Below, piece by piece: positions 32,705-41,299 of a stretch of 64,000 nt of DNA (position 1 is the stretch's first letter; every line of letters begins with the position of its first letter). Under the pieces are notes generated by a model. It was not told where the DNA came from and searched no databases. It saw nothing but the letters and a program-made list of their open reading frames with translations. The stretch is from positions 236,139 through 300,138 of the forward strand of contig NW_003314305.1 of the NCBI RefSeq assembly GCF_000143415.4, given 5' to 3'. The DNA comes from Selaginella moellendorffii (taxonomy: Eukaryota > Plantae > Lycopodiophyta). The position numbers and the translations under genes are program-made.

Positions 32705-33978
32705 GCGGTTCTCAATCAGTGCAACTACGTGGTACTAGATGAAGCGGACCGCATGATCGATATGGGGTTTGAGCCGCAGGTACATGTTCTCATTCTTATG
32801 TGAATTGAGAATTAATTCAAGAAATGCAGGTGGTCGGTGTTCTTGATGCTATGCCGTCTAGTAATCTCAAACCCGAGAACGAGGACGCGGTATGAAAGTA
32901 TGAGCGTCTCATACACGTCGTACTAAGTTGTTTTGATCTCTTGTAGGAACTGGATGAGAAAAAGATTTACAGAACTACTTACATGTTTAGTGCAACGATG
33001 CCGCCTGCCGTGGAAAGACTTGCACGAAAGTACTTACGTAATCCGGTCGTAGTTACAATTGGAACTGCTGGAAAAACAACGGATCTCATCACGCAGAATG
33101 TTCTCATGGTCAAGGATTCTGAGAAGCTCGACAGGTCTGTACATATACCTTTTATTGGAGCTCACCTCTTTTTTTCATTGCAGATTACAGCGCATGTTGA
33201 ATGATCTTGCGGATAAGACGGCCATCGTGTTTGTCAACACCAAGAAAGCTGCCGACGGTCTAGCAAGGCAACTCGATAAGCTGGGCTACCGAGTGACGAC
33301 CTTGCACGGTGGGAAAACTCAAGAACAGCGTGAGGTCCAAAGGCTCCTCTTTCTTTTTGGTTCTTTTTGTTACGTAGTCCGTGGTTTTAACAGATCAGCC
33401 TAGAAGGATTTCGTAGCAAACGCTACAACTGCCTCGTTGCCACCGACGTCGCTGGTCGTGGAATCGATATCCCGGTTGGTTTCTTATTCTACTTCTCTTG
33501 GAATCAAAACAACTCACGTCGAGTTTGCAGGACGTAGCCCATGTCATTAACTTTGATATGCCGAATAACATCGAGATGTATACGCACAGGATCGGTAAGT
33601 TTAGTTTTTTGTTTTTCCCCGCGGTTTCTGAGAGCTAAACATTTTTTCCAGGTCGTACTGGTCGCGCGGGCAAGACTGGCGTGGCCACGACGTTCTTAAC
33701 TTTGGGAGATACCGAAGTGTTTTACGATCTAAAGCAGGTAACGCTCTGATAGTCTCGTGTGCTTGTGGCTGATTTAGAGAGGTTTCCTTTTCACGCAGAT
33801 GCTTGTGCAGAGCAACAGTCCTGTTCCTCCAGAGCTGTCGAGACACGAGGCCTCCAAATTCAAGCCTGGTAAATCCCATAGCTTTCTTCGCTCTAGTTTT
33901 ATACTAACGCTTGATTCGTGCACAGGAACTATACCCGACCGGCCACTACGGAGGAACGAAACCTTGTATGCTCATTAA
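30037..33978 (+). CDS. PRP28: U5 snRNP DEAD-box RNA helicase PRP28/DDX23 (RH21-like), many short introns
   Basis: RS/RD-rich N-terminus; [66 protein letters not shown]. Confidence 0.96.
32671..32698 (+). repeat. (GT)14 microsatellite
   Basis: Perfect dinucleotide run directly before the intron acceptor AG at 32699-32700. Confidence 0.95.
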
Positions 33979-34254
33979 CACGAGCCTTGTACATAGTTTT
34001 CCGGTTTTTTTTTCTCTCTCTTTTGTTGGTAAGCTCTACACATTTGAGGCGAAAAATAAGTAGAGCCGAAACTTAGCTAAGAACTTACAAAAACGAAAAC
34101 ACTTTTTTCTCTCAAACTTACAGATGATCTCTATGTGCCGTGGCAAAACTGGAACGTTGTTTCTCTCTTCTGTACACGATGGTGGCCCTGTACACGGTCG
34201 TATTCACAATCCTCGAGCCAGGTACCTTTTTCTTCTTTCCTGTTGGTCGAAGTG

Positions 34255-37200
34255 TTAGAATCTGAAGAGCGGCTTGTCCTTCTCTTTGGATATCTTGGCT
34301 TCCTCTTCGGCTTTGATCTCCTCTAGTTCGAGCCTCAACCTCTCCAGTTCCAGCTCCTTCAACCGGACGTGGCCATCCAAGTCCGGGCAGTGGTGCTGTG
34401 GTGCTCGAGGTGGATGGATCGGTATCATCCCGGAGAAGTCCTTGCCCGAGTAGAAACTGGGCCTCTGGACGTAGTCACCACCCTCGCGCTTGGTACTGTA
34501 AGCCTCCTGCAGCGCCTCCACCAAGATCTTGGTCTCCATTCCCTGCTCGGACTTCCCCAGCACGTTTAGATCCGACGCCGTGTCCGTGGACTTGCGGTTT
34601 GGATCCAGGCACGCATTGCCGATGTAGCGGATGAACTTCTCCACGCGTGCTATCTCCGCCTTGACGAGGATGGACGCCTCCACAAACGGGCGGATAGTCT
34701 CGTTGTAACTCTTCACCGCCGCCACCTTTGCCTTGTGTTCCAGCAGAGCCTCCTGGAAAGCCTCCGAGTTCTTGGCATTCACCTCCAGCGAGAGCTTCTC
34801 GTGTTCTTCTTTCGCCCGTGTTACATCCGTCTCGTAGTCGACCTCCGCCTGTGCGCAGGCCGCCTTCCACTGGATCTTCTTCACCCTCGTCACCTCCTCG
34901 TTTTGAGCTTCCACCTCGGCCTTTTTCTTGAGCATCGCTGCTATCTGACTGGCGCGCCTCATGTTCTCCTCGTGAACGAACTTGGATTGCCGCTCGTACT
35001 CCTCCACTGCGGCCTTTGCAATCGCCATGTTCTCGGCAGCCACTGCCTCGCACGCCAGCTTCCAGTTCGCCCTTGCGCGCTCCTCGGTCTCCTGGTTGAG
35101 CTTGGCAAACTTCTTGGACTGTGCCTCGTGCTCCGCCATGGCTGCTGCTAGCTCTGCTTTGTAAGTCGACAGTGTCTTCTCCTTGTTCTCTTTGAGGTCT
35201 TGGATCTTCTGTTTGAGAGCCGCTACTCGTCGAGCGTTTTCCAGCTTTACTTTGTCGTAGGTGCTCTGGAATGCGTCCTCCGACTCCTTTTTGATGCGCG
35301 CGTTCTCCGACTCGATGTACGCCACCCTCGCTGCGTGATCCGCGTGAGCTTTTTCTGTTGTTTCTTTGTTCGTCTGAGTGATCTCGGCCACCATTTTTGC
35401 GTGGTTCTCCTGGTTGATCCTGTTCCTGGTCGCGACTGTCTCTTCCATCTCCTTCTGCTGCCTCTCGGTCTCCTTGACTTTAAACTCGAATGCTGTTTTC
35501 TTCTTGAGACAATCGACCTCGTACTCTTCCATTGCTTGCTTCAGACTGAGCGCGTTCATTTCCTCCACCCATTTCACGTCCTTCTCGTACTGCTTTTTGG
35601 CCTCGGCTACCAGCCTTGCGTTCTCTTCGTCAATGTGCTTCACCTGGCGCTTCCATTTCTCGATTTCTTCTACAGCGCGTTGATTCAGCTGCTCGACACG
35701 CCGGCACTCCTCCAACCACTTCTCCCTGGCAAAGTCGTGCAGTACCATGTTCCTTGCAATGATATCTTTGCAGCCGTCCTCGTACTTCCTCTTGGCAGCC
35801 GCTAGCAATGCTTCGTTTTCTTCGTCAATTGACTTTATAAGCGCCTCGTAGTCCTCCTCCATTTTCTTCTGATTCTTCTGATAAGCTGCTAGCCGAGGTG
35901 CGTTTCTTTCCTTGTCGTAACGTAGCCTCACTTTCTCCTCAAGGTCGTGTATCGTCTCAACCATACCACGAACGATGTTCCTCCGTTGCTCGCCTTCTAT
36001 GATGGATTTAGCCCACAGCATGTCTTCCAGAGCCACCCCTGACACTGGCGGCGGTTTTGTTGCCCAATTCCGGTCGACATGTCTTACAACGCCTCCAGTT
36101 AGCTCGGAGATCCTCTGCAGGAAACGTTCTCCATACTTCGTCGTCCCCAATCCAACTGTGTACAGGGGGGTGACAGCGCCTTGCATCTTTAGAAGCTTCT
36201 TGATTTGTTGCATCACCTGAGACAATGACAATAGTTAATGTCAAATAAACTTCTAAAGCAACAAATGAGAAACCATACCAGAACAGGCTTGTCTGGCTTT
36301 CCATCAGTGAGAAGATATATGCAATCACAAAAGCTCCGACTAAAAGAAACATCGAGAGCCTTCAGCAGATTCGTTGGGCCTCCTGCTCCCCAACGCAATG
36401 CCCAGTTCAGCGCCTCCTCAAGGCTGGCAGGCGTTTTCTCTATCATTGCCTGCCTGAATGTTCCCTTGCGTTTAGCAGAATGACAGAAAAATACCATTTC
36501 TCACCTCCTGAGGACTCCAGAACCGGGGTGACGCAGTGTTTCTGGTGTTTTGTTTGTACAGCCTGTAGTTCTCCATGGAAGCGTAACTCCAGGCATCAAA
36601 CGAGTACATGATAATGTCGAAATGCGTTGCTGCTATGGCAACCTGCAAAACATCAGCAAACTCAGTAACTAACTTGATCAAAAGCCAATGTGTGACATAC
36701 TCACCTGGCCCCTGGGAGAAAAAACCGCAGTCAGGATGTCATGAGCCATTTTCATACCTCCTTTAGCCATGGTTCCACTGGCGTCTATAAGGAATATAGG
36801 CCTCTGTCCAGCAAGATATCCTATAGGATCCGGAGCTGGAGGAGGCTTCCATGGAGGCAACACGAGCGGAGGTGGTGGAACGTAAGCTGGCCTTACTTTC
36901 AATGCGGGAGGATGGAATTCTGGAAGTGGCTCGCCTACAGGTGGTAGGAAAACGGGTTCGGGTTTCAACACTAGAGGTAGAGGATAAGGTGACTCTGGAT
37001 AAGGAAGGAGGGCTCTCGGCTTGGCTTGACAAGGCTTGCCTTTCCTAGCATACATGTCGACATTTGGCATGCACTTCCCCTCGCAACAACAGGGACCAAA
37101 GCTCTCGTCGACAGCATAGTAGGCTTTTTCACAAGGCCGAGGTTCAGGAATCGGAGCAACAAATGGCGGAAGAGCCTCCATAACTGGCATCGGTAAAACT

Positions 37201-38566
37201 GGAACCTTCATAGGAATTGGAGCACTCGGGAAGTCGAGAAGTTTGGGTTCCACCCATTGAGGCAAAGGAAGTTTCTCAGGGGCATAGTAAGTTGGCAGAG
37301 GATCTTCCTTGTATAAGGTTCTGTCGATGCTGTTTTCATCTTCCAGAAAGATTGGCTGAGGCGGAATTTTCAAAGGTGAGACGCGGAGAGGGGGTGGCAA
37401 ATCAAGAGCAGGAAGTTCTTTGGGAACAGGGGCTTCAAAGACCGGGAGCTCAAGGCTAGGACCAATCCCCTCGGATTCTTCGGTTGGAATGGAAAAAAGG
37501 CCGTCTATGGGATACAGCTGTGGCAGAGGCTTCATTTCTGGAGGCTCAAACTCGGGTAGGATTTGTTGCTCTGGCGGACTGAAAATAGGCAGATCCTGTA
37601 AAAATGAAAAGCATTGAACCACGAGTAACAAAGAGTTGTTTACGTACCTTGTAATGCGTGTTGACAATCTTGCTTCTGAGGTGTGTCAGCAGCTTCCGTA
37701 GCTCTTGAACCAAGTAGCTCAAGGGAACGCTGTAAGAACCATGAACTTGTCGGCCATCGGGGAAAAGGAAGTGACCAAAAGCATTCTCACAATACTTTGC
37801 GTGGATGTGCTTATCAACCTGTGACATAAAGCAAGCACTGAACCATATGTAAAGCAAGCCAGAAAAAAAAACAACGATCTAACCTGCGACACATCCGCAT
37901 GCGAATGGTCAAAATAAACCCATTTTGCCAGCAGCACGTCCATCAAGGTTTCAGGAATTTTCTTCTGCCTACTTTTGCGTGTCTGCATCACATGCTGTCG
38001 ATCAGCCCGCTGCATAGATAACATAAAAGAACTAGAGAAAAGAAACGTACCTTTGGAGCATCATCCTCAAGTGCTTTATCATCCTCGTCAGGATAGACCC
38101 TGGTGTCAGGCTTCTGTGGCTTACGTCCTGGCTTTCCTTTTCCCTTGGACTTTAGCTTCTTCTCGAGCTTGTGATCAATGTGGTCGGCCAGTGCTTCCTG
38201 TCCCTTGCAACACGGCCCTTGACGGCCCCAGAGTGCTTGCACCAATTCCTGTGGAAGCTCTCCCTTCCTGGCCATTCCCATCTTAACCTCCGAGGCAACG
38301 TCACGCATTTGCACCGACAGCCAACTCCAGCCTTTGTCCGACTTCGTGAGAAAACGCATGCGTTTCGCCTTTGAAACCTTGGAGTGATGGTGGTGCTGTG
38401 GGCTCTTGGGCAACGGAGACGCTTGAGCTTCGTGTGATCTTGCCCGTGAGCCACCACGCTGAAGCTCTCCTCTTGCACGGGCATATCCATACTTTGGCTG
38501 CTTGATGTTCTCCATGCTCGTTCGAGTTGGACAGCCATTGCGCCCGAGTGAAGCACTGTTGGTCAT
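34255..38566 (-). CDS. Large protein: basic N-terminus, proline-rich repeats, vWA domain and long helical repeat region (~7 exons)
   Basis: vWA motifs IFLIDASGTM, GGPTNL, IYLLTDGKPD, LYTVGLG and FLQRISELTGG are spread over GT-AG exons; Pro-rich exon ~37597-36705; helical exon ~36218-34255. Start uncertain. Confidence 0.8.
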
Positions 38567-39310
38567 CCTACATACGTCCTAACAGGGATTTCTTCATCGT
38601 CCTGTCAAGAACACAACAAGGAAACTTGCATAAGCATATGATACAGAGAAAGAAGCAAGGGTTCCAAATCTCTCTCACCTGACATGCTGGACAATGCTCC
38701 ATGCCATTCCCTACGCCGCATTGCGGATTCCCTCTCATCCTAGACAACAATCCCTCAGTGGCGCTGCTAGAGGGAGACCAGATCAAGACATCGCCCCAGG
38801 GTTTCGCAACGATCTTACCTCAGCGCGCGCTGCGGATTATCGCACCCTAAACTCGTCCCCATCACCGACATCGCGCCCGCACAGCCAGGCGCTATCCATT
38901 CCCTCGATCATCAAAACCTAAAACCCTCTTCCCTTCTCTCTCGCACCACCCTTCCCAGACCTAAAATTCAAAAAAGAACCTTCATTAGCATATACCAGTG
39001 GATAAAGTATACGCTTATAAATTTAACTGATGACGTGGGGCATTAAGTAGATGGTGGCGTGGCATTTTAGCGGGTGACGTGGTATTAGCATATACTATAG
39101 TGCCGTGGCACTTGAAAATAAAATTTAAGAGTTCCACTCCAAGGAAGATCTCGCCAATCCATGAACAGTGCCACCACGAGAGCTGTGAACACGACCAGAG
39201 CGATTCTCCCATCAAAGTCAAGCTTTTCTTTACCGTGACTTCCAAGTCGATGGGTTCCTCCTGTCAGATCGTGTCCCCGAGCGAGGAGGCCTCTGTCATC
39301 AATAGCGCGA

Positions 39311-40761
39311 TCACGACGCCTTCTCGGCCTCGGGCTCCTCAACCAGCGCCTTGAAAATGCCCAGCTTCTCCACCTGTTGGAGCGCCTTCCCCACATCCCC
39401 AAGCCTCACCGTCTGGGAGATGACCGAGTCCCAAGGCAGATCGACGTGCTTGGCCATGAGCTGGACTCCCTTGTAAAAGTGGCTAAAGTCCGACCCCCAG
39501 CACCCTTTCACCGTGAGATGCTTCCGGTTGATGAGGTGATGGGGATTGACGACAGCGTCTCCGTTGTTCGTGTACTGCCCCACCACAACGTAAGTCCCAC
39601 CGTCTCGGCAGAAGCTCATCCCCTCGGGAATGGCCTCGGGCCGTCCAGTCACTTCAATCACCACGTCCGCCATTCGGCCGTTTGTCAAATCCCGCACTAT
39701 AGCCACTCTCTCACTTGGTGCCGCTTTCTGGAGGAGACAGGAAAATCATTAATCACAGATGTTGTTTCTGTGGTTACTTTTCTCACCTCGATGTTTACTG
39801 TAGAGTCAATCCCGAATCTCTTCACTACTTCCAAGCGATGTTCCGGAGCCCCCGTCACGATCACCTGTGATGCCATCGGGATTTTTATGATGGGCTCGAA
39901 ATGGAGGGTGGAGCTTGAAAGTACCTGGAATGCTCCACTCAGACGTGCCAGGAGAGCTGCCAGCAAGCCAACGGGGCCGGATCCTTGGACTAGAACACGG
40001 TCCATGAGCTTGATACCAGCTCGCTCGATCGCATGCAAAGCAGTCGGCAGCCTATCCAGCAGCACATCCACGAGTCAAAAGTTACAGCGAAAAGGACAAG
40101 AGCGTACCCGCATCCTCCAGCCATGAAGACCCGAGGAGGAAGAACTTCTGGCAAACGTATGATTTTGGTATTGGGAGGAAGATAAATGTGAGAAGACCAG
40201 CCACCTAACAGGCCTTTTACGTCGCGAGGATCCGCACGGCAAGTGATTCCCAGGACACGTCTTTTCGGACAGCGAGTGGATTCTTTGTCCACCTGGAAGA
40301 GCAATAGAACAGCGAGCACCAAAAAAATACGAATGGGGATACAAACAAAAGGAAAAGAAAAAATGTACCAGGCATGAAACGCAAGAATTGCAAGTGTCGA
40401 TCACATCCAGGTAAGTGACCACTGCTCCCTCTTCTATCTGATAGCCCAAAAGATTAGCAAAAATCATCGCAAATAACAAGAATGCAGGTGAAAAATCAGT
40501 GGTTACCTGGATTCCATCCACGTCCCTGACCGAGCCAACCATGGCCACGACTCGCCCCACAGCAACATGCCCGGGGATGATCGGATAGGGCACGGTATCA
40601 AGGCGGCGATGCTTGAGATGAACGTCAGTGCCACATACCTCGGCCGCGATCATCCGCAGCAGCACCGAGCCGGATTCCATGTCGCCGCTGCTGATCCTGG
40701 AGCGCTCCAGCGCCAGGGCGCCATCGCCGTGGAGCAAGATGCACGTGTTCTCGAGAATCAT
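39311..40761 (-). CDS. Zinc-dependent medium-chain dehydrogenase/reductase (MDR), multi-exon
   Basis: VCGTDVH, PIIPGHV, structural-Zn C..C..C.......C, GCG|LPTALHA, GSGPVG Rossmann motif, ADVVIEVTG. Confidence 0.9.
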
Positions 40762-41299
40762 TTCAATAAACCCTAAAATATTTGCGGATATTCGGGGTTT
40801 TGGCAGCGCATCTTTTTGAAAGGGGCTTTTAGGGCAAGTTGCCGCCAAATCTATCGGCACCGACAAGTGCTCCACATTTGTCAAGCAGTGCGTGTAAATT
40901 TATATGGTTTGTGGCACCATCACCTAGGAGGCTTGTACGGCGGCGAGCGAATATCCGCCTCTTCTCTCTCGGTCAGATGGGACATTTTCCGTCCTAGACG
41001 AAGCTCTCGCTCTTTCTTTCTCTCCCCCTCCAGGCGCTAGGTTTTCGAGAAAGAAAGAATTGATCGACGACGCGGCGCGCGATCGATCGCGCCGGTATGT
41101 CCATGGCATTCCATGCGTCGAGGCGCCGCGGCCAGCGCTAGCATCGCCGCTCGCAAGATCAAGATCGAGCAATGGTAGGTTATCCAGGGAGAATGTGAGT
41201 GGATTCCAGCTCCTAGATGTTGATTTGTGTGGAATCGTCATCGTTTCGCTGCTAGGATCTTCGTCGAGGACGATTTTTCGCCGTGTAGAACATGGATAG

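Follow-up and report, generated by a model that had tools for sequence, protein, structure and literature searches.

Gene model and protein architecture

A single minus-strand gene, LOC9647484 of Selaginella moellendorffii, was found in the window (the whole stretch of 64,000 nucleotides that was analysed), and its model is backed by RNA-derived contigs. The exon joints were taken from RNA-like contigs of four runs, and the introns conform to GT..AG in 8 of 8 cases. Seven coding exons are spliced into an open reading frame for a product of 1315 amino acids, which matches GenBank EFJ18635.1 identically from residue 173 on. Furthermore, one RNA-like contig of 3711 nt covers every exon, so that both arms of the protein lie on one transcript. 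The protein is real and uncharacterised. The gene and its terminal regions are as follows.

34258..38566, minus strand: coding region of LOC9647484, 1315 aa (RNA contig joints, spliced ORF)
34255-34257, minus strand: stop codon TAA
36217-36278, 36450-36504, 36643-36704, 37596-37647, 37819-37883 and 37983-38050, minus strand: introns between coding exons (RNA contig joints, GT..AG)
38602-38678 and 38764-38818, minus strand: two 5'UTR introns (RNA contig joints, GT..AG)
38051..38566, minus strand: basic N-terminal region, residues 1-172, Lys/Arg-rich (translation, ortholog alignment)
34258..34605, minus strand: conserved C-terminal region, residues 1200-1315 (invariant alignment columns, AlphaFold secondary structure)

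From its N-terminus, the protein consists of the basic region, a His/Cys module, a proline arm of 263 aa, a vWA domain, a helix of 431 aa and the conserved C-terminus. The basic region carries the motif R-x-G-E-L-P-x-x-L-V-x-A-[IL]-W, conserved in the ortholog alignment, while the C-terminal region carries L-I-E-A-L-x-x-A-Y and P-I-H-P-x-R-x-x-x-H-x-C, followed by a short charged helix. Reading of the translation revealed no signal-peptide-like hydrophobic stretch at the N-terminus and no LPXTG at the C-terminus. A first-pass annotation, made from the letters, had assigned both arms at these coordinates to one gene of a plant, had seen no obvious signal peptide, and had described the domain order as the reverse of that of antigen I/II; the single transcript, the species, the N-terminus without a hydrophobic leader and the order Pro-vWA-helix bear it out on each point.

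The helix arm

34606..35898, minus strand: helix arm, residues 769-1199, a 22-residue unit repeated about 19.5 times (periodicity, alignment, AlphaFold)

Asn recurs in the helix arm with a period of 21.7-21.8 residues, reached by 0 of 2000 shuffles, and Asn and aromatics together with a period of 10.9 residues (1 of 2000), while the aromatics alone were non-significant in the single sequence (268 of 2000). The ortholog alignment shows little or no variation in the columns of aromatics (H/Y/W/F) and of Asn, which mostly follow each other at exactly 11 residues, and the register slips in phase three times, near residues 895-927, 989-1036 and 1101-1134. The alternation of Asn and aromatics every 11 residues, proposed on first pass, stands in the alignment, and the arm measures 431 residues rather than about 380. 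The hydrophobic power was 7.3 at a period of 3.64 versus 0.04 at 3.50; the arm is therefore, in agreement with the first-pass annotation, not a heptad repeat, and the period of 3.64 lays the stripe along a straight face.

Relative to Asn at position 0, the core of the 22-mer has an aromatic (H/Y/W/F) at -11, V/C/L at -7, V/I at -4, L at +3/+4 and Ala at +7, which is an a-e-h (4-3-4) pattern with aromatics and Asn at alternating 'a' positions. Hendecad coiled coils and 11-mer amphipathic repeats have a 4-3-4 spacing, a near-straight stripe and a period of about 3.64-3.67; the helix arm resembles them in its a-e-h spacing and differs from them in its 22-residue super-repeat and in the invariant Asn and aromatic/His of its core. 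The arm might accordingly be a straight hendecad-type homo-oligomeric coiled coil with an aromatic/Asn core of its own, in which bulky side chains would fit between small ones of a staggered or antiparallel dimer or tetramer; the proline arm would then be a tether apart from it, extended for the most part and offering its LPx[F/Y/W]xPP motifs to other proteins for binding. This reading, which draws on the a-e-h pattern and on V/I/L at three of the six core positions, is rather unlikely; a coil in register would be severely weakened by 19 successive core Asn and 19 aromatic/His. In each 22-mer, three of the six core positions are taken by H/Y/W/F, Asn or Ala, a composition poor for an ordinary coiled coil. 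Such a core is typical of surfaces that bind polyproline-II (PPII) strands (PMC3707005).

The length of the helix arm, 431-432 residues in 12 of 12 orthologs from Chara to Ginkgo, has been kept over several hundred million years (roughly 500+), which suggests that the arm works as a ruler. AlphaFold predicted helices at residues 751-901 and 908-1198, and with the break between them, at residues 902-907, the rod of the stalk may be jointed. Two other ways of looking at the repeat were rejected. An LRR-like Asn ladder does not agree with the composition of the region, which abounds in E, K, A and R and has one Pro and two Gly in 415 residues, nor with the continuous helix predicted for it, and matching to the microtubule lattice would set a 22-residue unit of 3.3 nm against the 4 or 8 nm of tubulin.

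The proline arm

36807..37595, minus strand: proline arm, residues 263-525, 26% Pro (periodicity, ortholog alignment)
37029..37133, minus strand: four-Cys insert of the proline arm, C417-x15-C433-x3-C437-x13-C451 (invariant Cys columns)

The prolines have a period of 5.4 residues, the second harmonic of 10.8, which was reached by 0 of 1000 shuffles, and the aromatics of the arm peak at 10.7-11.1 residues (13-48 of 1000 shuffles). The arm is built of LPx[F/Y/W]xPP units in clusters about 11 residues apart, with the motif present in roughly 12 of some 20 possible units and with four exact 11-mers, at residues 475-518, as the best run. The 11-residue proline repeat of the first-pass annotation survives as these clusters and this run; a uniform tandem repeat it is not. 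Acidic segments and the conserved four-Cys insert, possibly a zinc knuckle, break up the clusters. An FH1-like poly-Pro tract was also considered and rejected, since the prolines are spaced out and form no long runs.

The periods of the two arms match 1:2, at about 10.8 residues in the proline arm versus 21.8 in the helix arm, as had been claimed for a PPII strand and a helix, with the qualification that an 11-residue PPII unit is a non-integer number of PPII turns. From the liverwort Riccia to Ginkgo, the proline arm is 42-47% identical and almost gap-free; this is unusual for a disordered linker and speaks for the proposed stalk. In Riccia, Selaginella and Ginkgo it measures 259-265 aa, and in ferns 304-305 aa, with 38-40 aa inserted just after the four-Cys insert and no matching change in the helix arm. 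Both arms keep a fixed length over roughly 500+ million years, the proline arm apart from this fern insert. Six to eight sequences cover the proline arm and about eight carry both arms; in Chara no proline-arm exon could be located, as runs of N occur in the upstream 10 kb and introns there reach about 36 kb. Were the helix arm a homo-oligomeric hendecad coil, the conserved short Pro motifs of the proline arm could serve as ligand sites, but it would be mere coincidence that the periods match exactly 1:2 and that the proline arm has a fixed length.

The vWA domain and its kinship to VWA3 proteins

36043..36806, minus strand: divergent vWA domain, residues 526-720, across four exons (Pfam, Foldseek)
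37648..37967, containing the intron 37819-37883, minus strand: His/Cys-rich N-domain, residues 178-262 (alignment, hhalign, motif scan)

The sole Pfam match in the full protein is PF00092 for the vWA domain, with a score of 19.2 bits that lies below the cutoff of 23.8, and Pfam scans of single exons gave nothing useful. The fold itself is that of a vWA domain: Foldseek matched it to the vWA domain of CLCA1 with a probability of 1.00 and a TM of 0.56, and also to alpha2delta, ITIH1 and TFIIH p44. The DxSxS metal-binding (MIDAS) motif is not intact, as it reads D-A-S-G-T in Selaginella, and it is unconserved in the family, with D-C-S-G-T in Ginkgo, D-C-G-S-A in ferns and E-C-S-S-T in Riccia.

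The His/Cys N-domain has the pattern W-x-Y-F-x-H-x-H ... H-x-H-A-K-Y-C-E-N-x-F-x-H-F ... V-H, then a helix, with 23 invariant columns across five plants, and AlphaFold predicted for it a beta-hairpin and a helix at pLDDT 58-79. Both this domain and the vWA domain lead to the same animal proteins. The closest non-plant relatives of the vWA domain are VWA3A and VWA3B (E 2.5e-11 to 5e-6; 24-32% identity), BLASTP giving 27% identity over 177 aa at E 2e-11. By hhalign, the N-domain matched VWA3B with a probability of 89.6% and 43% identity over 35 columns, the VWA3 side of this comparison being bird only; a motif scan located the HAKYC module in bird VWA3B as well as in every plant ortholog. The module shared with VWA3A/B, H-A-K-Y-C...F-x-H-x-F...D-G-x-x-V-H, stands before the vWA domain in both, and the proteins are similar in size, at about 1300 aa. 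The number of vWA_3 domains in VWA3 proteins is two or three (three VWA_3 stretches in VWA3A) and VWA3B has a DUF4537, whereas LOC9647484 has one sub-threshold vWA domain and no DUF4537. Unlike in VWA3, a proline arm of 263 aa separates the pre-vWA module from the first vWA strand, and the periodic helix of 431 aa has no counterpart there. VWA3A and VWA3B have been linked to motile cilia (PMC7331728, PMC12310455).

Predicted docking of the two arms

36855..37004, minus strand: confident proline-arm segment, residues 460-509, adjoining the vWA side (AlphaFold run 2, pLDDT 83-90)
35626..35925, minus strand: initial 100 residues of the long helix arm stretch, 760-859 (AlphaFold run 2, pLDDT 88-94)

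The first-pass annotation had inferred that the two arms dock antiparallel into a rod of roughly 55-65 nm. In the full-length AlphaFold run no docking was seen, the whole proline arm staying at pLDDT 30-45 with a pTM of 0.30; little co-evolution signal is available to AlphaFold because only six to eight sequences cover this arm. In a second run on 501 residues (run 2), proline-arm residues 460-509, coil by DSSP, had a pLDDT of 83-90, while residues 760-859 of the helix reached 88-94 versus 62-79 for the unpartnered helix beyond, so that 50 confident proline-arm residues stand to 100 confident helix residues as 1:2. Most of the run of four exact 11-mers (475-518) falls within the proline segment. 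Judged by AlphaFold confidence, helix 760-859 is the proposed partner of residues 460-509, and docking would be indicated for the approximately 15 nm of stalk nearest the vWA domain, not for the whole 55-65 nm. The predicted docking thus fits the annotation over this short stretch, while the pLDDT below 50 of the proline arm in the full-length run does not.

The same predictions bear on the alternatives. The full-length monomer without proline docking agrees with the homo-oligomeric hendecad coil, as do matches of the long single helices to coiled-coil structures at Z 5.5-6.5; against it, the coil segment to which run 2 gave high confidence, 50 residues long, is accompanied by exactly 100 confident residues of helix. 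Another proposal is that the helix arm folds on itself as an antiparallel hairpin or bundle at breaks near residues 902-907 and 1017-1046, giving a shorter rod with a largely disordered proline arm. AlphaFold does break the helix at 902-907 and dips in confidence at about 1017-1046, and the Asn/aromatic register slips at the positions of the AlphaFold breaks. The resulting segments are unequal, however (about 150, 110 and 170 residues), which means uneven pairing; the pTM is only 0.30, and the conservation of the proline arm and the run 2 result would be left unexplained, making a folded helix very unlikely. Docking could also occur between molecules, the proline arm of one lying on the helix arm of its neighbour in a polymer or lattice. 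The period and length matches fit such pairing in trans equally, and the N-domain may stay on the vWA domain as in VWA3B, which would disfavor a simple intramolecular hairpin; the confident segments of run 2 nevertheless flank the vWA domain on both sides, as an intramolecular hairpin predicts, and pairing in trans ranks as the least probable of these alternatives.

In structure comparisons, VIA-align matched residues 41..500 of the run 2 model, comprising the proline segment and helix, to the antiparallel coiled-coil elbow of cohesin. Antigen I/II was absent from the best 50 matches of Foldseek and VIA-align for both models, which were only vWA folds and generic long helices. The ESM Atlas gave no usable match, and no solved relative emerged when the PDB was searched by sequence, whether with VWA3B or with the family profile. 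The likeness to antigen I/II that had been proposed lies in the stripe, whose aromatics and Asn are the residue types that contact the PPII strand there (PMC3707005); fold search did not retrieve it.

Comparison with known stalks and a proposed mechanism

In the pancreatic-polypeptide fold, a PPII strand of about 8 residues lies antiparallel on an amphipathic alpha-helix of 18 residues, with prolines interleaved with aromatics; LOC9647484 differs in that it would repeat this motif about 20 times. To our knowledge, a stalk formed as a hybrid of alpha-helix and PPII strand is documented only in streptococcal adhesins and, in miniature, in this fold. Like antigen I/II of streptococci (SpaP/P1, SspB; A3VP1, PDB 3IOX), LOC9647484 is predicted to pair a long alpha-helix and a PPII strand in a stalk with a globular tip, and its helix repeat is about twice its Pro repeat in length. 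In the antigen I/II stalk, aromatics pack on prolines, and the backbone of the PPII strand is hydrogen-bonded (PMC3707005). The differences are substantial: there is no sequence relationship, Pfam finding the vWA domain only; the domain order is reversed (Pro-globular-helix); the tip is a vWA domain instead of the V-region; the helix is not Ala-rich and repeats every 22 rather than 82 residues; and LOC9647484 is eukaryotic and presumably cytoplasmic, with neither signal peptide nor cell-wall anchor. Its repeats are of 22 and about 11 residues, with Ala-rich A repeats and 39-residue P repeats of antigen I/II undetected. LOC9647484 is probably an antigen I/II-like stalk that evolved independently.

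A mechanism is proposed in which LOC9647484 would be a cytoplasmic structural protein, kin of the cilia-associated VWA3 proteins of animals. The proline arm would take an extended polyproline-II conformation and fold back antiparallel on the straight aromatic/Asn stripe, one face of an unsupercoiled helix, so that one 11-residue proline unit (~34 A) would lie over each 22-residue helix unit (~33 A). The product would be a thin rod of two strands, carrying the vWA domain at its tip and the N-domain and C-terminal region together at its base. The four-Cys insert would lie roughly opposite the first break of the helix pattern (about 895-927) and form a joint; both this joint and the full-length zipper are extrapolated from the segment predicted to dock. 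Alternatively to a single strand, the kinship of the N-domain to the pre-vWA module may mean that it packs on the vWA domain and that the proline arm is a closed loop. The rod would act as a spacer or strut of fixed length, up to ~65 nm, in the sperm motility apparatus. The whole explanation, that of a VWA3-related protein forming a sperm strut by a zipper of proline arm and helix, is given a probability of about 0.5. An unrelated and longer second example in a eukaryotic cell would mark the design as a general solution for a thin, rigid rod of set length.

Distribution and the link to sperm

Homologs were collected by an exhaustive HMMER search, because coiled-coil words overwhelmed a word-indexed search with the last exon (one match). 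The family comprises 16 clusters among 1.84 billion representative proteins, and among these it was undetected in any seed plant without swimming sperm. Its named members come from Chara, liverworts, lycophytes, ferns and Ginkgo, all lineages with flagellated sperm; no ortholog from moss, hornwort, cycad or Marchantia was among the named homologs. On this evidence, the family is restricted to streptophytes with swimming sperm, and from this taxon distribution alone we infer a role in sperm. The sperm-flagellar role guessed on first pass is in keeping with this distribution and with the similarity to VWA3A/B. Literature searches on the gene identifiers returned nothing, none of the 12 papers listed for von Willebrand proteins in plant sperm contained 'von Willebrand', and the screen of Koshimizu et al. 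leaves the family unmentioned.

A more specific place for the rod can be suggested, although it is quite improbable: a fixed-length strut (up to ~65 nm) of the multilayered structure and microtubule spline at the flagellar base, both unique to streptophyte sperm, the zipper, within one molecule or between neighbours, setting a lattice spacing. If the strut reading is true, this would be the first case of the antigen I/II stalk principle in eukaryotes, with an independent origin in an ancestor of the cilia-associated VWA3 type. As a candidate, the family offers a new marker and component of the sperm motility apparatus in plants, and it links plant sperm to VWA3A and VWA3B, two poorly understood cilia proteins of animals.

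Gene model and protein layout

The gene LOC9647484 lies on the minus strand of the window. In contigs of four public sequencing runs, probably RNA, aligned to window 33900-39400, eight joints were seen, all eight of them GT..AG on the minus strand, and a single 3711-nt contig (X3 record 9) crosses all exons, from 34709 to beyond 38600. The spliced exons give one ORF of 1315 codons, with the ATG at 38566 and the stop at 34255-34257. A single gene therefore contains both the proline exon (36705-37595) and the exon coding for the helix (34258-36216), which removes the two-gene alternative raised in the first-pass annotation. The encoded Selaginella moellendorffii protein is identical to GenBank EFJ18635.1 from residue 173 on; RefSeq XP_024541004.1 uses another splice donor and loses 17 vWA-domain residues (window 36450-36642). 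RNA contigs and orthologs support the longer form, and the 55-nt intron 36450-36504 is backed by RNA-like contigs of runs X3 and X9 and by EFJ18635.1. The layout, in residues of the 1315-aa model encoded on the minus strand, is as follows.

Residues 1-172: basic N-terminal region, signal peptide absent, as first noted
Residues 178-262: small His/Cys-rich domain (N-domain)
Residues 263-525: proline arm
Residues 526-720: vWA domain
Residues 723-745: short neck helix
Residues 769-1199: long periodic helix (helix arm)
Residues 1200-1315: conserved C-terminal region

A 51-nt skip at 36453-36503 in run X11 would shift the frame. The basic N-terminal exon differs from the RNA contigs by indels at 38179-38216 (9 bases skipped and 6 added), which look like allelic or haplotype variation. 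On another scaffold, a 742-aa partial copy from the same 90% cluster, XP_024517048.1, is misnamed 'WEB family protein'.

Periodicity of the two arms

The Asn residues of the Selaginella helix arm recur every 21.7-21.8 residues (reached by 0/2000 shuffles), and Asn and aromatics together every 10.9 residues (1/2000). The ortholog alignment is far more telling than this single-sequence periodicity: Asn is invariant or nearly so at 796, 818, 840, 927, 945, 967, 989, 1058, 1080, 1101, 1145 and 1167, with columns of H/Y/W/F only mostly exactly 11 residues to either side. When twelve regular repeats, drawn from nine species, were superposed, the 22-mer profile read -11 aromatic, -7 V/C/L, -4 V/I, 0 Asn, +3/+4 Leu and +7 Ala, a 4-3-4 (a-e-h) hendecad twice per 22-mer. 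Hydrophobic power is greatest at a period of 3.64 residues and practically absent at 3.50, so the stripe runs straight along one face of an unsupercoiled helix. By its sequence pattern the arm is not a heptad coiled coil, and the 22-residue period proposed in its place holds. The register slips at about 895-927, 989-1036 and 1101-1134. Its length is nearly constant from Chara to Ginkgo: nine orthologs have 431 residues, and three liverworts have one more (432). Conservation this strong suggests a ruler or strut.

The proline arm is 26% Pro, with a strong 5.4-residue Pro period, the second harmonic of 10.8 (0/1000 shuffles), that is also found in five orthologs; its aromatics follow a period of 10.7-11.1 (13-48/1000 shuffles). 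The unit is LPx[F/Y/W]xPP, and the clearest run comprises four exact 11-mers at residues 475-518 (F478, F489, Y500, W511). The 11-residue repeat originally described stands as a period, in clusters and not as an unbroken array: acidic stretches such as FLEDENSIDRTLYKED and a four-Cys insert with invariant Cys 417, 433, 437 and 451 lie between clusters. Riccia, Selaginella, three ferns and Ginkgo share 42-47% identity over the arm with hardly any gaps (mean column identity 53%), which is unusual for a disordered linker. It spans 259-265 residues outside ferns, which carry 38-40 more directly after the Cys insert.

The Riccia fluitans entry KAL2641736.1 omits the proline-arm exon entirely, together with the first strand of the vWA. 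The genomic DNA nevertheless contains the exon in full (CM092407.1, L001:7531-8433; 301 codons, 41% identical to Selaginella), and in Riccia sorocarpa it is annotated. A low-GC plant in JGI metagenomes 3300049218 and 3300047499 has the exon and the same helix pattern, on contigs of up to 187 kb (L003:340-10630, 34% GC on L003; L004) that hold a complete ortholog (N-domain, 299-codon proline exon, exons for the vWA and the helix), annotated in prokaryotic style as several separate ORFs; the source is possibly a moss. In Chara braunii, whose gene has a ~36-kb intron, the annotated protein begins within the vWA domain, and runs of N with microsatellite sequence directly precede the first vWA exon that can be recognised (BFEA01000539.1, L002:8650-9050).

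Possible pairing of the arms

The periods of the proline and helix arms, 10.8 and 21.8 residues, stand at 1:2. Polyproline-II (PPII) rises 3.1 Å per residue and an alpha-helix 1.5 Å, giving 33.5 Å versus 32.7 Å, and the repeat-length match on which the first proposal was built is borne out. Without its Cys insert the proline arm has ~227 residues against 431 in the helix, a ratio of 1.9.

AlphaFold2 was run twice with alignments of orthologs as input. Run 1 (RefSeq-model residues 180-1298, 17 sequences; pTM 0.30) gave two very long helices with a break at 885-890 in RefSeq-model numbering (P0001), and a proline arm at pLDDT 30-45. Run 2 (model residues 410-910, covering the Cys insert, last proline cluster, vWA and helix start; 18 sequences) placed proline-arm residues 460-509 at pLDDT 83-90 with no DSSP secondary structure and helix residues 760-859 at 88-94, the helix beyond falling to 62-79 and the vWA scoring 45-72. 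The confident parts are the proline segment nearest the vWA and the first helix stretch after it; 50 extended residues span ~155 Å and 100 helical residues ~150 Å, as expected for an antiparallel hairpin that has the vWA at its apex. Pairing is indicated by these segments of run 2, and run 1, with its low-scoring proline arm, shows no docking. VIA-align matched model residues 41..500 to the folded elbow of cohesin, a rod of two antiparallel strands (205 aligned, Z 6.3, rmsd 7.4), which is weakly consistent with an antiparallel proline/helix arrangement.

In each 22-mer, three of the core residues are aliphatic; the others are an Asn, an Ala and either an aromatic or a His. An in-register coiled coil would be poorly served by a core of nineteen buried Asn and nineteen bulky aromatics. 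By contrast, aromatics that stack on proline rings and side chains that hydrogen-bond to the unsatisfied PPII backbone are described for the A3-P1 hybrid of streptococcal antigen I/II (AgI/II; PMC3707005). Residue chemistry therefore favours a zipper over a plain homo-oligomer, and is compatible with a staggered or antiparallel coil of the helix arm. Because contact between the arms is read from AlphaFold confidence scores, the runs disagree on the proline arm, the alignment over it is shallow and the top fold-search hits include no AgI/II structure, the odds of an alpha/PPII zipper are put at about even. At best it is established for the ~15 nm of the stalk that adjoin the vWA.

Family distribution and relatives

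An exhaustive HMMER search of 1.84 billion representative proteins with the last exon returned only 16 clusters, and no angiosperm, conifer, animal or chlorophyte protein matched. The named members come from the following plants.

Lycophytes: Selaginella, Diphasiastrum
Ferns: Adiantum (two species), Ceratopteris
Ginkgo: two genes
Liverworts: Riccia (two species), Calypogeia
Chara

All these lineages make flagellated sperm, as the flagellar profile anticipated at the outset would have it; the tie is suggestive and incomplete, since no named moss, hornwort, cycad or Marchantia member was found.

The closest non-plant vWA domains are those of animal VWA3A and VWA3B (BLASTP E 2e-11). The N-domain motif H-A-K-Y-C-E-N-x-F-x-H-F...D-G-x-x-V-H matches a VWA3B segment just upstream of a vWA (hhalign probability 89.6%); in the plant protein the 263-residue proline arm is therefore inserted between this pre-vWA module and the first strand of the vWA. 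The plant protein is a divergent relative of VWA3 and lacks its multi-vWA architecture. Its metal-binding motif varies across the plant family, and the vWA more likely serves simply to bind proteins. VWA3A is part of the expression signature of human motile cilia (PMC7331728); respiratory cilia have been found to contain VWA3B (PMC12310455).

Proposed function and likeness to AgI/II

A literature search found no paper on any family member. The best reading is that the protein may serve the sperm motility apparatus as a structural rod and may descend from a VWA3-like ancestor. An alpha/PPII stalk would carry the vWA at its end, the conserved N- and C-terminal regions would meet at its base, and the zipper could act within or between molecules. 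The protein does not belong to the AgI/II family: it shows no sequence similarity to it, lacks signals for secretion or anchoring, carries another domain at its tip and, as was first pointed out, has the reverse domain order (proline arm, vWA, helix). It may still work like AgI/II. The original observation is confirmed and strengthened by conservation, and its AgI/II-like interpretation is supported in part. The family is uncharacterised and lineage-restricted, and its stalk would vary a structural principle already known.

Neighbouring loci

Two plus-strand joints, 34028-34122 and 34220-34324 (both GT..AG; window 34028-34324), indicate spliced transcripts of a convergent plus-strand gene, a DEAD-box helicase with ORFs around 32983-33403. 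Antisense to the vWA gene, these transcripts cover its 3' end with the stop codon and extend as far as 34707 or beyond. The upstream minus-strand neighbour at 39314-40899 looks like a gene of the zinc-dependent alcohol-dehydrogenase family, over which RNA contig depth in run X3 is very high.
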